From Salpingoeca rosetta (lineage: Eukaryota > Protista > Choanoflagellata): 64,000 nt of DNA. Both the position numbers and the translations under genes were made by a program. The notes beneath the pieces are model-generated. The model ran no database searches. It worked only from the letters and a program-made list of their open reading frames with translations, and was not told the origin of the DNA. The stretch lies in NCBI GenBank assembly GCA_033442325.1, contig JAWQFM010000005.1, positions 1,923,665 to 1,987,664 of the forward strand. Direction: 5' to 3'. Shown here piece after piece: positions 3,721 through 12,526 of the stretch; positions within the stretch are counted from its first letter, which is position 1, and each line of letters begins with the position of its first letter.

Positions 3721-4465
3721 ATGCGGCTTGCGCTGATTGCGGTGCTGGCCCTGCTGGCAACCGCTGCCATCGCAAACGCTGAACTGAGTACGTGTGGCAT
3801 TGGGGAGAAAGAAGTGCTCTGAGGGAGAAGTGCGGTGCCCTGGTCCTCGTTTTGGATGCATGCCTCTGCCTGCATGCAGCTTGATGGTAGTGATGGTAGC
3901 CTTTGTCTTTGTTGAATCTGGTGCGCTGGTGCGGCGCTCGATATCTTTTCTTCTTTTGGTTTTTTCTTTCTTTGGTGACACGACATTTCCACCTCACACT
4001 CATTCGCACACACCACCACCACCACCACCACCACCAACAACAACAACGAAACAAAACCACACAGAGGGCGAGCGAGGCGACCCTGGCGAGCCTGGTGTCC
4101 CTGGCTGGGACGGTGCACAAGGCGACGGCGGTGACGGAGGCGACGGTGGCCTCAACGGTATCAACGGTGCAGATGGTCGCCCCGGCGATCGCGGTGACAA
4201 GGGTTTCGCAGGACGCGACGGCGAGAAGGGCGCACAGGGCGCTCCAGGTACGCAAACGTGTGTGTCGTGTGTCTAGTGACGTGGTTGTCAGCAGTGAAGG
4301 GAATGGTCTTGTTTGTGTTCACCTTTGTGCCGCGAGGAGCCATCCGCTCGCCTCCACGCCTACTCTTCTTTGTCATGCATCATGCCCAACGCGTCTCCTC
4401 ACACAACACAACACAACACAACACAACACAACACAACACAACACAACACAACACAACACAACACA

Positions 4466-4498
<33 letters not shown>

Positions 4499-5976
4499 CA
4501 CACACGCACAATAATAGGGACCCCTGGTGAGCCTGGCGACCAAGGCCCTGCTGGGCCTCGCGGTCCTCAGGGTAACCCTGGTACAGATGGCGCTGATGGT
4601 GACAAGGGCTTCCGAGGCGAGTCTGGTCTCCCAGGCACGGACGGTCGCCCAGGCGAAGATGGCCTCCCTGGCGACAAGGGCTTCCGCGGCGCAGATGGCT
4701 TTGACGGTGGGTGTGTGGTGGGTGTGTGGCCTGCGCTCATGTGTCGTGTGTGCGTGTGCTTGTGCGCGCATGTTTGCGTGTGTATGTGTGTGCTTGTGTG
4801 CGCGTGTTTACGTGTGTATGTATGTGTGTGTGTGTGCTTTTGTGCGCGCGCGCTTATTTGTTTCATCATTGTGTGTTTTGTGCGCGTGTGCCAAGTTGAT
4901 GATGGTGTTGCTTCGAAGCCTCCCCCCTAAAACTTGTTTATTTGTGTACTTGTATAACCCCCCCCCCCTTTTCGTGTGATGATGATGATGCTTGGGTGAC
5001 CCACCCTCCTTTGTCTTGCCTACTGTACTCACCACAACTGCAACCACGCTCTTTGCGCATGTCTACGCGCGTGTGTGCATGGCTTGTGTGCACAACAGGC
5101 ACGGTCGGCGTGAACGGACGCCCTGGTGACGACGGCGCAAAGGGTGCCAAGGGTGAGCAAGGCACACCAGGCTCCCGCGGCGCCACGGGCCCTGCGGGGT
5201 CTGATGGACGCCCTGGCGAGGACGGTCTGAACGGTGCCAAGGGTCAGGCTGGTGATGCCGGCTCCCGTGGTCCTCAAGGTGACAAGGGCCGCCGTGGTGC
5301 AGAGGGCCCTCGCGGTACCCCAGGTGCGTATCCGATGTTGATTGCCGACGTGTTGTGTTTGCCGTGTTTGATCTGATGTGTGTGCGTGTGTGCGTGTGTA
5401 TGCTTGTGTTTGCGTCTGTGTGTGCGTGTGTATGCTTGTGTGTGTGCGTGTGTGTGTGCGCGCGCGTCTGCGTGTGTATGTGTGTGTGTAACGTGGCAGT
5501 TGATGTGCGTCTGCGTGCATGTCATTGTATGTGACACCGTGGTTGGTGTGCGTGTTGCGACCTCGTGTACCTGATGCACGCCTTCCGTTCGCATTGCGCA
5601 AACATCTTTTTCGTTTTGCATCCCTCCACACTCGCCTCACACACTTGCCTTGCACACGCACACGCAATTGTACATGTTCAGGTGTCGATGGTACGCCTGG
5701 TGAGGATGGTATTCAAGGTCCCACAGGTTTCAACGGCCCCGCTGGTCCCAAGGGTCAGCGCGGCAACACTGGCATCCCTGGTAAGTGGCGCTGCATGTGC
5801 GCGCATGTGTGCGTGTGTGTGCAGTTGATAATCATTGGGCGCAGCGTGTATCATTGTCGGGTTTGATTTGTCCACCGATGAAGCGGTGACATTCAGCGAC
5901 GGGAAGTATTTTTTGCCCATGCGCTCGTTTTTATGTGTCGCTTTCTCTCACGACAACCAACAACAACCAACAACAA

Positions 5977-6041
<65 letters not shown>

Positions 6042-6657
6042 AATGACTGGCGGTTGCTTGTGTGTGCTGTACAGGTCGTGACGGAACCCCAGGAACTCCC
6101 GGTCGCAAGGGCCAGCGCGGGCCTGAGGGACCTGCTGGGCCCTCGGGTTTGGCTGGGCCCAAGGGTTTCCGTGGCACTGACGGCGTTGATGGCAGTCGCG
6201 GTGACCCAGGTCCCGCAGGCGAGGACGGTCTCAACGGTACCCCTGGTACCCCAGGCTCCCCAGGCACCCGAGGTATGTCTTCTGGGCGTATGTATGGATG
6301 TGTGGGTTTGTGCGTGCGTGCGTGTATGCACGTGCCGTTGCAGTGGTTCCTTTGATATTTCTGTTTTCTGTCACACGTTGCGCCTTTATGCATTGTCGTC
6401 TTTTTACACGCATGCCTTCACGTCGCGGACGTCATCATTGACATGACCTCACCTTCATGTGCAAAATCCCCCCCCCCTCTTAATTCTTTTGCAATGTCAC
6501 ACGTTGATTGTTGTGCACAGGTGACCCTGGTGATGCTGGTCCTCGTGGTAGCCCCGGTCTGGACGGGTGAGTTGAATGCAGATGCAGACATCGTCATGCA
6601 GACGCACGCACCCACTTGCACATTCTGCACATACATTTCCACACACACACACACACG

Positions 6658-6690
<33 letters not shown>

Positions 6691-9600
6691 GACACTCTTC
6701 CATCAACTACCTCGCTCTCGATTTACTCGCGGCTTTGTTAATCAACCGACGCAACGATAACGCACGGCTTTCGTCTGTTCTGCTTGCTTCTTCTTCCCTT
6801 CGTTGTGCAGTACGGACGGAGCTCGCGGTGACGCCGGTACACCCGGGCCCAAGGGTCTCAAGGGTCTTCGCGGTGTGGACGCTGCTGCTCGTGGTGCCCC
6901 TGGCCCACGTGGTGACAAGGGTCAGCGTGGTGAGCCAGGTCCCCCTGGTATCACTGGTGACAAGGGTTTCCAAGGCGAACCAGGCTTTGACGGTGCGTTT
7001 GTTGAAATTGTAAAAGAGGGTGTTATGTTGAAGTTGTTGTTGTTGGTGTTGTTTAAGTTGTTGTTGTTTAAGTTGTTGTTGTTGCTGTTGCTGTTGCTGT
7101 TGCTGTTGCGTTTGCGTTTGCGTTTGTGCTTGCGTTTGTGCTTGTACTTCGTGAACGTTTGCGACTGTTGTGTGATGTCCTCCTTGCTCGCATTCACACA
7201 CACACACACTCACTCGCACAATCAAACACACACACACACTCTCGTACACTCACTCACACACACTCACACACGTTTACAGGCACGGATGGTGCAAAGGGTC
7301 TTCGTGGGCCCCGAGGTGCTCCTGGCAACCCTGGTGTCGATGGTACAAATGGTGTGCCAGGGCCCCGTGGTGTGAAGGGCGAAGCTGGTGTCCCAGGTAC
7401 CCCTGGCCGCGACGGAGAGCAAGGTCTCAAGGGTGTGACAGGTCCCGCTGGGCCCAAAGGTTTCCGCGGTGTCTCTGGTGCTGATGGTGCTGATGGTGCC
7501 CCTGGTGACGTTGGCGAGCCTGGCTTGAACGGGACCCCAGGCACCCCAGGCCGCAACGGTGAAGACGGTCTTCGTGGCCCCAAGGGTGACACTGGTACGT
7601 TATTGTGGTTTCGCATACTGCGTGCGCTTACCTGCGTGTGCGTGAACATGCGTGCGCTTGCATCCTTGCGCTTGTTGTTTGCTGTTGTAAGTTTGCGGCG
7701 CTCTCGCCTGTCTTGCTGCTACGATTGGTTGCTATTACTGCTTCCGATCACAAACACGCAAACAAAACAACACGGTATTCACGTCCTCTCCCTCGCGCCT
7801 TTGTCACTCACGCCAATGCATCACCAAATGATGTTTTTTTTTTGTACTGCATTTCTTCACTTCAACCACAAACAGGTGCACAGGGTCCCCAAGGTGCCTC
7901 TGGCTTGGACGGTGCTCCTGGCCCCGACGGTATCCCCGGTAGCCCTGGCGACAAGGTGTGTACATTGCCTTGCTGCGTGTGTAGTTGCGCATTTTGTGTG
8001 TGGTTGTATCGTCGTGTTTTCGAGGAGTTGTATGTTTGTGTAGTTGTTCGAGTGTGTGTGCGTGTCGCATTTTTTTTTTGTGTGTGTGTGTTCGTGAAAC
8101 GAATGGATCATCCACCCACCAACGAACAAACGCCGGCACGCGCACACGTTCACGTACACGCACACGCACACGTTCACATACACACGCGCGCACTCGTTTA
8201 CTCATTGACACAATCATTTCTTTTCCTCAACAACAACAACTACTTTAACAACAGGGTGCACTTGGTGATACTGGTCCACGCGGTGCCCCAGGTGACCAGG
8301 GTCCAGCTGGCCCCCAGGGTCCGGCTGGTGAGCCTGGCCGTGACGGTCTGAAGGGTGAGCACGGTGACGCTGGTGCCCCTGGCGAAGACGGTGTTCAAGG
8401 CCCCGATGGTGATGCAGGCTTCACTGGCAGCGACGGACCCCGCGGCACTACTGGTGACGCAGGCATTCCAGGCACGGACGGAACCCCAGGTCGCAAGGGC
8501 CAGCGTGGTTCTCAAGGCGCCCGTGGTCCACAAGGTGCGTCGTTTGCCTGTTGTTGTTGTTGTTGTTTAGGTTGTTGTTGTCTCTGTTGTTGTTGTTTAA
8601 GTTGTTGTTGTTGTCTCTGTTGTTGTTGTTGTTTAAGTTGTTTCAGTTGTTGTTGCTTGTTGTTGTTGTTGTTGTTGTCTCTGTTGTTGTTGTTTAAGTT
8701 GTTTCAGTTGTTGTCTCTGTTGTTGTTGTTTAAGTTGTTTCAGTTGTTGTCTCTGTTGTTGTTGTTTAAGTTGTTTCAGTTGTTGTTGTTGTAACAATGA
8801 TGTATCAGGTTATGTCCTCCCCACTTCACACGTTGTGTCCTGCGCATCAAACCCATTTTACCATCACCAACTTTGCTCATCCCCCCCCCCAAACCCTCCA
8901 CGCCCCCCCCCCAAACTCTCACACACGATCGCCACACTGCAGGCTTCACTGGTGCGAATGGGCCTCGAGGCTTTGATGGTACGGACGGTGTCCCTGGTCG
9001 CAAGGGTCAACGCGGAACCTCAGGTGCCCCTGGCGTGAAGGGTGAGCGTGGCCCCGCTGGGCGCGATGGTACGGACGGTCGCCCTGGTGAGGATGGTTTG
9101 GATGGTGCTGATGGTGCCCCTGGCCCTCGTGGCTTCCCTGGGCCGAGTGGTCCAAAGGGTTTCCGCGGTACTGATGGTACCCAAGGCGACAAGGTGCGTG
9201 CTGTGCTGCTTGCGCGAGCTTTGTCTGCTTGACTAGGTGCAACTTGAGTGCTTGTGTTCGTGTGGTTGTTTGATGTTCGTTGCACGTTGTCTGCTTGATC
9301 GTTTGTTGGGTTGTTTGGTTGGTTGGTTGGTTGGTTGGTTGGTTGGTTGGTTGGTTGCTTTTCGTTCGTTCAGTGGTCGTTTTGATGTTTTGTCGTTTAC
9401 TGTTTTTGCATGCGTGTTGTCAACGTTTGACTTACCATGCGCAACTCACACATTGCTTTCTTTGCGTGTTGCGCAGGGCTTCCGCGGTGACGCTGGTCGC
9501 GACGGTACTCCAGGTGTGTTTGCACAACCCATTTCAATGTCTTTATGTTGCGTGATGCAACTCGTTTGCCGATCGGCACCACCCACCTCCAGCGCTCGTT

Positions 9601-10347
9601 TCTCCCTCAGTCGTTCGGTTGCAACCCTCCCCACACAACACGGTTTTTTTTCGTTCAAACTACCAATCTCACTCACCGCTTCACCACCATGCTATGCTGC
9701 TTGTATTGCGTTAGGTACCCCTGGTACTCCTGGCGAGGACGGCTTGTCTGGCCCTCGTGGGCCCCAAGGCCCGCGTGGTCTCAAGGGTCGCGCTGGTACC
9801 CCTGGTGAGTTGTCACACGCACGTACAAGAGAGAGAGAGAGAGAGAGAGAGTATGTGTGTGCGTGCGGTGTGTGTGTGTGTGTGTGCGGTGTGCGGTGTG
9901 CGGTGTGGTGTATGTGGCGTGTGTGTGAGTGTGTGTGTGTGCGGTGTGCGGTGTGCGGTGTGGTATGATTCACATTGCCATGCTATGTCATGTGTTGCAC
10001 TCGCTGTGCTCTCGCGCTCACTCACATACACGCACACATCACTTCCCTACTACCCCTCCTCTTCACGCCTTCTCCCCACCCCTCTTCCTTGCCTTACACG
10101 CGCAGGTACAATTGCTGAGGATGGTAACCCAGGTAACCCGGGAACACAGGGCCCTGCCGGTCCCCAAGGTCCTGGTGGTGATGCTGGTCCCAAGGGTCTG
10201 CAAGGTCCCCGCGGTCTTCCGGTACGTGTAAACGCGCGCACATGCTTCTTGTGCATGTTTAAGTTGTTGTTGTTGTTGTTTAAGTTGTTTAAGTTGTTGT
10301 TGTTGTTTAAGTTGTTGTTGTTGTTGTTTAAGTTGTTGTTGTTTAAG

Positions 10348-10390
<43 letters not shown>

Positions 10391-10894
10391 AGTTGTTGTT
10401 GCTGTTGCTGTTGCTGTTGTTGTTACCTTGTGTCGTGTGCTGATTGTTTTGTATTATGTTTGGTGTCGTGGTGGCTTGCGCCAACTCGCCATCACTCGCA
10501 CCACCGTAGTGGTCGTTGTCAGTTCACCTGCACTGTCGTTGTTTACATGCTGTCGCCATTGCACGCAATCAACATACACACATGCACACTTTGCGCCGAC
10601 ATCTTCTCACCCACTGACTTCTGTCTGTCCGCTCGTGATACGTGCCTATTCACTCTCCTCTCATTCTACAGGGCGAGAAAGGTCGCGTCGGTATCCCTGG
10701 TACCCCCGGTACACCAGGTACGGACACAGCCCATCGTTCATGATGTGCACTGCCCTCATCATGCGTCTGTATGTTAATTTTTCTCCACCTTCCCACTGCC
10801 ATTGCGCCACCGCCAACAAGCACCTCCCCCCGGCTCTTTCTTGTTGTCGCTCCTTCTCTCAAACACCCCCTTGTCACTCCTTCTTACGATTACC

Positions 10895-10941
<47 letters not shown>

Positions 10942-11363
10942 TCTCCTCTTCTCGTCATGGCATTTTGTCTCGATGAAGGTACCCCCGGTGACAAGGGCCA
11001 GCGCGGCGACGCCGGTTCCCCTGGTACTCCTGGTTCCCCTGGTGAGGATGGCTTGGATGGAAGCCCAGGCCCTCGCGGTATCCCTGGTGTTGATGGCGAC
11101 GATGGTGTGCCTGGCCCCAAGGGTCGCGCTGGTACCCCTGGTCTTGACGGAGCTCGCGGTGATCCAGGTACGGCACTTGTTGCATGTCCAACGTCGTTGT
11201 TGTTGTTTTATGTTGTTGTTGTTGTGCGTGTGCGTGTGTCGTGCTGCGTAGTGTCGTGTCGTGTTGTGGCGTGATTGCGCATGTTAACATGTTTGTACTC
11301 AACAACTCGTGCTCTTGAATTTTATTCTTTCAAACATTCGCGCTGATTGTGCGCTCACACATC

Positions 11364-11404
<41 letters not shown>

Positions 11405-12259
11405 CACATCAACACACACATCACATCAACACACACATCACACACACATCACACACAGGTCCCCAGGGTCCTGCTGGTGCCGATGCCGAGGATGGTTTGC
11501 CCGGCCCTGGTGGCGAGAACGGTGACGCCGGTGACCGCGGCTTCAAGGGCTTCCGTGGCGACCCTGGCCCACGCGGCGCAGATGCTGGCGATGGTGCACG
11601 CGGCTCAGACGGCCACCACGGTCTCAAGGGCGACAAGGGCAACACTGGTCCCACTGGTGTGAAGGGTCAGCCCGGTACGGACGGTGTCGATGGCGCTGAT
11701 GGCAGCCCAGGTGCCAAGGGCCAACCAGGCTTTGATGGTACGGATGGCCTCAAGGGCATGCGCGGTTACGTTGGTGACAGCATCCCGGGACCTAGTGGTG
11801 CCATTGGTGACAAGGGCCAGCGCGGCGACGGCGGTGACGGCGGCATCAAGGGTAACGTTGGTCTTCCTGGCTCTGCCGAGGCCATCCGCGCCTTTGAGAC
11901 AGACGCCGATTGGCGCGCGTTCAAGACCGAGTACGACGCTGCGGTTGCCAGCTTTGACAACTACGACGGCTCTTGCGACGATGTCATGGATGACTTTGAG
12001 ACTGCCCGCCAGGACGCCCGCGATCTCTACGACACCATGGAGGAGTTCTTCAGCAACATTGACCGTGCAGCGAGCGACGCGCAAACCGATATCCAAAACG
12101 CCCTCAACCAGTACGAGGCAGAGTGCGAAGAGCTTCGCGTCGAGACATACGCAACAGTTCAGGTTCGTCTTTGTGCATTTTGCGTCTGTGTGTATGTGCG
12201 CGCGCGCGTGTGCGCGTGTGCGCCTGTGTGTCTTTGGCGTTGCGTGTGTGTGTGTATGT

Positions 12260-12301
<42 letters not shown>

Positions 12302-12526
12302 ATGCAAGCATGTGTGGGGGGGGGGTGCGGCCATTTTCCATTTTGCCATTCTCCAGTCTTGTCTCTGTCTCTTCGCTTTTGTGCCTTTCCTCCTCGCCAT
12401 TTCTTCCTCACGCCCAATCTCCCTTCCTTCCTCCCCTCTCCCTTCTCTCTCCACCGCCATCTTCTGCAGGAAATGATTTCGGCCCTGCGCAACTGGGTCA
12501 ACTACTACACAGACGGCAGCGACTAA
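3721..12526 (+). CDS. Secreted collagen: signal peptide, about 981-aa Gly-X-Y domain, 113-aa helical C-terminal domain (about 1117 aa, 19 exons)
   Basis: Phase-consistent GT-AG exons: 3721-3787, 4065-4247, 4518-4706, 5099-5323, 5682-5780, 6075-6272, 6521-6566, 6811-6992, 7280-7594, 7876-7955, 8255-8534, 8943-9193, 9477-9513, 9715-9804, 10106-10221, 10672-10717, 10979-11167, 11459-12162, 12470-12526. They sum to 3354 nt. N-terminus [29 protein letters not shown]; the triplet register is kept across every junction. Confidence 0.93.

Follow-up and report, generated by a model that had tools for sequence, protein, structure and literature searches.

A conserved and previously undescribed helical domain at the C-terminal end of a long collagen of Salpingoeca rosetta

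The collagen gene described here encodes a chain that closes with a real, conserved and so far undescribed helical domain. It is located on the + strand of a 64-kb window (64,000 nucleotides of Salpingoeca rosetta DNA, the whole stretch that was analysed; positions are counted from its first letter), contains multiple exons and begins with a start codon at 3721. A 19-exon model of the gene yields a secreted-type chain of 1105 amino acids with a signal-peptide-like leader. Its last Gly-X-Y triplet ends at 11877, and a tail of 113 residues, the only non-collagen part of the mature chain, starts at 11878. This tail contains 29 D/E and 8 K/R residues, no proline, two glycines and two cysteines, and carries a net charge of -21. 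The first-pass annotation, made from the DNA letters, had given the coordinates and the acidic, proline-free composition of this segment directly after the last triplet correctly, and its splicing is now confirmed by RNA. It had also placed the only two cysteines of the spliced protein in the tail, which agrees with residues 1025 and 1075 of the 19-exon model.

Exon 1 (3721..3787, + strand) comprises the start codon and, based on the sequence and the exon model, a signal-peptide-like hydrophobic leader of about 20 residues. Gly-X-Y begins three residues past the leader, so that an N-terminal non-collagen domain is absent from the chain. The collagen part (4065..11877, + strand) is formed by exons 2-17 together with the collagen-coding stretch of exon 18 (11459-11877) and amounts to ~970 residues of near-continuous Gly-X-Y. 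On the + strand, 20 Gly-X-Y runs can be joined by GT..AG introns with the triplet register kept, and the collagen introns are mostly in phase 1 and split a Gly codon. Within the tail-carrying exon, the Pfam family Collagen (PF01391) was matched with an E-value of 1.2e-17 and 63.9 bits, compared to a cutoff of 27.2. Many of the introns within 4248-11458 contain long (GT)n, (CA)n or (TTG)n microsatellites. The lengths of the collagen exons are irregular (37-298 nt in the exon model) and are not multiples of 54.

The first 95 residues of the tail (11878..12162, + strand) comprise a linker, a first helix (helix 1), a D-G-S-C-D turn and most of a long helix. They are followed by a phase-0 GT..AG intron of 307 nt with a (GT)n microsatellite (12163..12469, + strand), which is defined by RNA joints, and by the last exon (12470..12526, + strand), which encodes the final 18 tail residues (12470-12523) with the conserved E-x-I-x-x-L-x-N-x-V-x-Y-Y end as well as the stop codon (12524-12526). 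Splicing of this intron was observed in 34 reads of each of two stranded raw RNA-seq runs (34 + 34), and the same joint is carried by two transcript contigs from older runs. RNA depth across the tail was 15-50, with a read orientation that fits a + strand transcript. According to loose ends of RNA reads, the penultimate exon starts at 11459, and the transcript contigs have a length of 3.5-3.8 kb, which is consistent with the coding sequence of 3.3 kb. Inside the intron (12311-12433), run X22 showed a depth of 2-5, corresponding to a little unspliced RNA, and run X21 showed none. Protein and profile searches of the genome find this locus alone, and the tail domain is thus single-copy. Three other genome matches to a degenerate DNA pattern of the cysteine motif were attributed to chance, as their frames are open for just 10-56 codons. 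Throughout, the chain of the exon model was used for residue and column counts, database searches were run exon by exon, and whole-domain modelling was performed on natural homologues.

An exhaustive HMMER search over 1.84 billion representatives returned nine matches, seven of which are true relatives with 23-65% identity to the homologue P0002 (alignment A1); all seven are unnamed metagenomic fragments. The other two were rejected: P0004 (5191 aa) is a repetitive coiled-coil protein with an hhalign probability of 2% and is unrelated, and P0006 (622 aa), another repetitive coiled-coil protein, was judged by eye to be a compositional match. A profile word search added P0022, a full member, and P0023, a short fragment, and a metagenome scan with the closer alignment A3 as query revealed L009, which is identical to the window's tail at 68 of 98 positions in the first tail exon and at 15 of 18 in the last. 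In all, there are about nine environmental eukaryotic relatives with 23-69% identity. Sequence scans of viral and prokaryote collections showed no relative. A word-index protein search with a 520-aa open frame (region 178-272) likewise found no relative, which is accounted for by the length filter together with the absence of words in common.

In every relative the tail domain directly follows Gly-X-Y. On the contigs, 89 to 222 triplets precede it in one open frame, which indicates that the relatives are long collagens too. As far as the sequences tell, the tail defines a small unnamed family that is confined to the C-terminus of long collagens from environmental eukaryotes, and its hosts are probably choanoflagellates and their kin. 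That the chain might represent a distinct collagen class had already been proposed, and these relatives, in which the domain follows long Gly-X-Y runs, show a recurring collagen type. A comparison of the window with L009 resulted in a dN/dS of 0.195 with saturated synonymous sites, indicating purifying selection.

The hallmarks of the family extend over the whole domain. The linker is conserved and of the A-E-P-[IV]-R-A-F type, and helix 1 presents W, F/W, W/Y, V, Y and F along one face. The turn [FY][DS]G[TSQ]CD is invariant, resembles a helix C-cap with an N-cap after it and lies 28 residues past the last triplet. The helices of all members are free of proline, columns 65-70 form a short polar stretch with Gly in three members, and the end is conserved as Q-E-x-I-x-x-L-x-N-x-V-x-Y-Y. 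A further hallmark lies within the collagen part, where a two-residue insertion (I-P; 11782..11787, + strand) interrupts the Gly-X-Y register, with exactly 10 triplets left before the tail. The segment of the last ten triplets (11788..11877, + strand) has a fixed length across the family, and the break is found 58 residues before the cysteine turn in all seven family sequences that reach it (including L002, L003, L004, L009 and L010). This fixed distance suggests that the last ten triplets and the tail behave as one unit of fixed geometry, and the break itself may serve as a hinge or mark a processing site. The window's tail shows the complete set of placement, turn, end and break in alignments A1 and A2. 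Two imperfections were observed further upstream within the last 140 residues of the triple helix: an Ala at the position of the expected Gly (11485-11487, G-A-D-A-E-D-G) and an A-G-D triplet between G-A-D and G-A-R (11584-11592).

The phase-0 intron after the T-V-Q codons is common to the window, L009 (about 2151-2330) and L003 (after 2733) and is absent at the same boundary in L002, L004 and L010, so that its presence varies in the family. The intron of L009 is microsatellite-rich like that of the window. Adjoining the collagen of L002, a gene for a 1281-aa coiled-coil protein (L002:2783-6625, - strand) has its best match in the window's genome at C5:1894821-1898141, ~38 kb from the window's collagen gene, with 27-33% identity and E-values of 2.7e-8 and 7.6e-5. 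This may be a weak hint at a conserved neighbourhood.

The tail is predicted to be all-helical, with a helix of ~19 residues, the cysteine turn and an amphipathic helix of ~79 residues. For the window's 95 residues alone, AlphaFold2 predicted helices at residues 2-7 and 10-27, a turn, and a helix at residues 33-94 with a pLDDT of 75.7. With alignment A1 and the intronless natural homologue P0002, it predicted helices at residues 12-30 and 36-114, again separated by a turn, with a pLDDT of 82.5 and a pTM of 0.39. Foldseek found 0 matches in the PDB, and the ESM Atlas, queried by shape and by features, yielded no more than generic or sub-threshold rows. The wide structural neighbours obtained with VIA-align were generic long-helix single chains of coiled coils with a Z of ~7, which is below the meaningful level for helices. 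A helix of 79 residues that bears an uninterrupted hydrophobic stripe would hardly be stable by itself, and together with the coiled-coil neighbours this points to self-association. A three-copy prediction of P0002 (141 aa; eight triplets and the whole tail) gave a score of 0.04 and a mark of 0.32, which yields no verdict and speaks neither for nor against binding.

On balance, we favour with moderate confidence the reading that the tail is the trimerisation and registration domain of the collagen chain. It is the only non-collagen part, it is located at the C-terminal site where triple helices nucleate, it is preceded by imino-poor triplets, and its long helix appears to self-associate; together, these features argue for a role in trimerisation. 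Through their tail helices, three chains would come together as a parallel three-stranded helical bundle or coiled coil, which would set the chain register and nucleate the zipping of the triple helix from the C- to the N-terminus. Stabilising imino acids are scarce in the final triplets of this helix (the last ten contain one GLP and no GPP). As the gene is single-copy in the genome, the product would be a homotrimer. The invariant cysteine, usually the only one in the chain, could form interchain disulfides, be it inside one trimer or from one trimer to another. That the domain is real, expressed and conserved, with a helical prediction and a periodic pattern, is what the data show, and its oligomeric state, its part in nucleation and its disulfide bonding are what we infer here. 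Aromatic residues (W, F, Y) and Ala are unusually frequent in the core, which would fit a globular helical bundle as well. If helix 1 simply folded onto the long helix as a plain hairpin, the remainder of the long helix would be turned back along the collagen axis and collide with it. This clash might be avoided in two arrangements. One is a straight rod. In the other, the linker would run up, helix 1 down and the long helix up again, which would bring the three cysteine turns to the collagen junction, by analogy with the end cystine knots of some animal collagens.

The distribution of the cysteines bears on this mechanism. Cys 1 (11974..11976, + strand; tail residue 33, protein residue 1025) is located in the turn that joins helix 1 to the long helix; its column 36 is C in 8/8 rows, and it is present in L009 too. 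In five relatives, namely L002 (390 aa), L003 (769 aa), P0003, P0007 and P0022, the turn cysteine is the sole cysteine of the known chain. Cys 2 (12124..12126, + strand; tail residue 83, protein residue 1075) occupies the 11-spaced hydrophobic core column 86, which is F/Y/V/L in most relatives, and is kept only in L009. A second cysteine is thus found at column 86 in the window and L009, at column 93 in P0008 and at column 71 in P0009, in all cases on the hydrophobic stripe. Because the invariant cysteine stands alone in five relatives and the position of the second varies, an intrachain lock is not a feature of the family. The disulfide lock between the two cysteines envisaged by the first-pass annotation is therefore not supported in that form, as Cys 2 is confined to the window's lineage and L009. 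Judged from the aligned family members, the conserved function of the cysteine cannot be that of an intrachain pair; the invariant cysteine, if oxidised in the secreted protein, would have to bond to another chain. One cysteine per chain cannot close a symmetric knot in a trimer, and as three per trimer leave one unpaired, links between trimers would be favoured.

This odd number per trimer also favours the main alternative reading, which we consider rather unlikely: the tail could be an end-domain for higher-order assembly or anchoring, while nucleation and chain selection would be carried out by the collagen sequence itself. It might join trimers tail to tail, provide cross-links via the lone cysteine and the terminal Tyr pair, or bind a partner in the cell coat. 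Besides the inter-trimer bonds that one invariant cysteine per chain would favour, the conserved aromatics with the Y-Y pair at the chain end, the net charge of -21 and the fixed two-residue break 10 triplets upstream, as a potential hinge or processing site, speak for such a role. However, no partner was identified by the analysis, and the tail, being the only non-collagen part, is placed where nucleation domains are. The roles in assembly or anchoring and in trimerisation are compatible with each other.

The favoured trimerisation role draws on the regular hydrophobic pattern of the long helix. In the window's tail alone, the periodicity power peaks at ~3.6 residues (z 7-10 compared to shuffled sequences), but ~50 residues of a single sequence cannot separate 3.6 from 3.667, and the hendecad call rests on the family profile. 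Averaged over the family, the profile peaks at 3.5 (heptad) in the first 26 residues of the long helix and at 3.65 in its last 53 residues; there, 3.667 (= 11/3) scores a z of 11.4, and 0 of 1000 shuffles reach the maximum. The 11-spaced columns 64, 75, 86, 97 and 108 as well as 60/61, 71, 82, 93/94 and 104 are hydrophobic across the family. The 11-residue periodicity that had been read from the window's letters is therefore borne out in part: its 11-spaced I, I, C, V and V columns are hydrophobic in all relatives, but the hendecad pattern is limited to the C-terminal half of the long helix, and the N-terminal part is heptad-like. Likewise, the proposed hendecad coiled coil or helical bundle agrees with an all-helical prediction containing one very long amphipathic helix, but the pattern passes from heptads to hendecads and is not hendecad throughout. 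An amphipathic helix with heptad-related periodicity directly after Gly-X-Y, as expected for a coiled coil, is present in the tail.

The polar, Gly-holding stretch at columns 65-70 could break the long helix in two. This possible break, at which the periodicity changes, together with a pTM of just 0.39-0.46 for the AlphaFold2 tail models, an alignment of 9 rows and the aromatic-rich core, is compatible with each tail forming a compact monomeric three-helix bundle without any role in oligomerisation, in which case the long helix would be an artefact of the shallow alignment. We regard this as improbable, since the P0002 model has a pLDDT of 90-94 throughout columns 60-110, the helices of every member lack proline and the hydrophobic stripe is unbroken.

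The tail was also compared to known domains. No Pfam family reached its curated cutoff for the tail of the window or of eight members. COLFI (PF01410), NC1 (PF01413) and C1q (PF00386) showed no match in hmmscan at E<=10 for the window or at E<=1 for the eight members. Nothing in NCBIfam reached a curated cutoff for the tail, PHROGs gave weak and inconsistent matches only across the four tail domains scanned, and PDB sequence and profile searches revealed weak helical noise only. The initial description of the tail as unrecognised thus holds for Pfam, NCBIfam, PHROGs and, by sequence, the PDB, and the known collagen domains that could have contradicted it, COLFI, NC1 and C1q, are absent even at permissive thresholds. 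No paper describing the tail domain was found in the literature search. A highly diverged version of a known non-collagenous (NC) domain of collagens (COLFI, collagen IV NC1, C1q, or the multiplexin or FACIT trimerisation domains) is very improbable: its sole point in favour is the C-terminal position on a collagen, whereas no such family appears in the permissive hmmscan lists of the window and eight members, PDB sequence and profile searches as well as Foldseek gave no meaningful match, and the tail is predicted to be all-alpha in contrast to the beta-rich folds of COLFI, NC1 and C1q.

Salpingoeca rosetta is a genetically tractable laboratory model, so that nucleation by the tail is directly testable in this organism. 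In a survey of choanoflagellate collagens, the partner domains were VWFA, SRCR, fibrinogen and lectin domains, and the tail domain was not described (bioRxiv 10.1101/2021.10.08.463732). Fibrillar collagens were deemed animal-only, as no chain outside animals combines COLFI with Gly-X-Y, and the choanoflagellate proteins with COLFI all lack collagen repeats (bioRxiv 10.1101/2021.10.08.463732). The window's gene encodes a secreted, near-continuous triple-helix chain of ~970 residues whose C-terminal domain is a different one, conserved and as yet unnamed. If the tail nucleates trimers, the design of a long helix with C-terminal registration would be older, or more often reinvented, than thought, and the tail would provide a compact new trimerisation tag for recombinant collagens. 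Taking the observations jointly, we tentatively suggest, as a possibility short of probable, a class of fibrillar-length secreted collagens of the choanoflagellate lineage in which a heptad-to-hendecad three-chain bundle with a junctional ring of cysteines would do the job of COLFI, while the odd number of cysteines would link trimers tail to tail into a polymer. If this were true, long secreted collagens with a C-terminal nucleation domain would predate or parallel animal fibrillar collagen, and the fusion of COLFI with collagen would be a domain replacement and not the origin of the architecture.

Among known systems, COLFI is an alpha/beta domain of about 240-245 residues with eight cysteines. 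Like the window's tail, it sits C-terminally on a near-continuous triple helix of ~1000 residues. This C-propeptide of fibrillar procollagens is described as driving chain association and carrying interchain disulfides (PMC5353611). The family chains differ in having one or two cysteines and no COLFI match to the tail. The V domain of Streptococcus pyogenes Scl2 is all-helical and of the hairpin type, trimerises into a helical bundle and promotes refolding. It is mentioned as a collagen-flanking domain alongside work on EPclA (PMC3368898). It differs from the tail in its N-terminal position, its bacterial origin and its two helices of similar length, and shows no sequence match. In EPclA, a collagen-like protein of an E. 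coli prophage, the helical coiled coil PCoil flanks the collagen helix and was experimentally identified as a trimerisation module (PMC3368898). It resembles the tail as a helical coiled-coil region beside a collagen helix, but is N-terminal to the collagen, consists of low-complexity Ala/Ser heptads and is of phage origin. Collectin necks (SP-D, MBL) and the coiled coils of class A scavenger receptors and transmembrane collagens are three-stranded, set the register and nucleate the triple helix. In collectin-type necks, as in the window's tail, an amphipathic helix directly adjoins Gly-X-Y. These necks carry a lectin or other head behind ~30 residues of plain heptads, whereas the tail has 113 residues in a helix-turn-long-helix arrangement with a heptad-to-hendecad pattern and an invariant cysteine turn, has nothing after it, and no sequence similarity between the two was found. 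The tail fits the known design of a helical oligomerisation domain beside a collagen helix, and its trimerisation is proposed here as likely.
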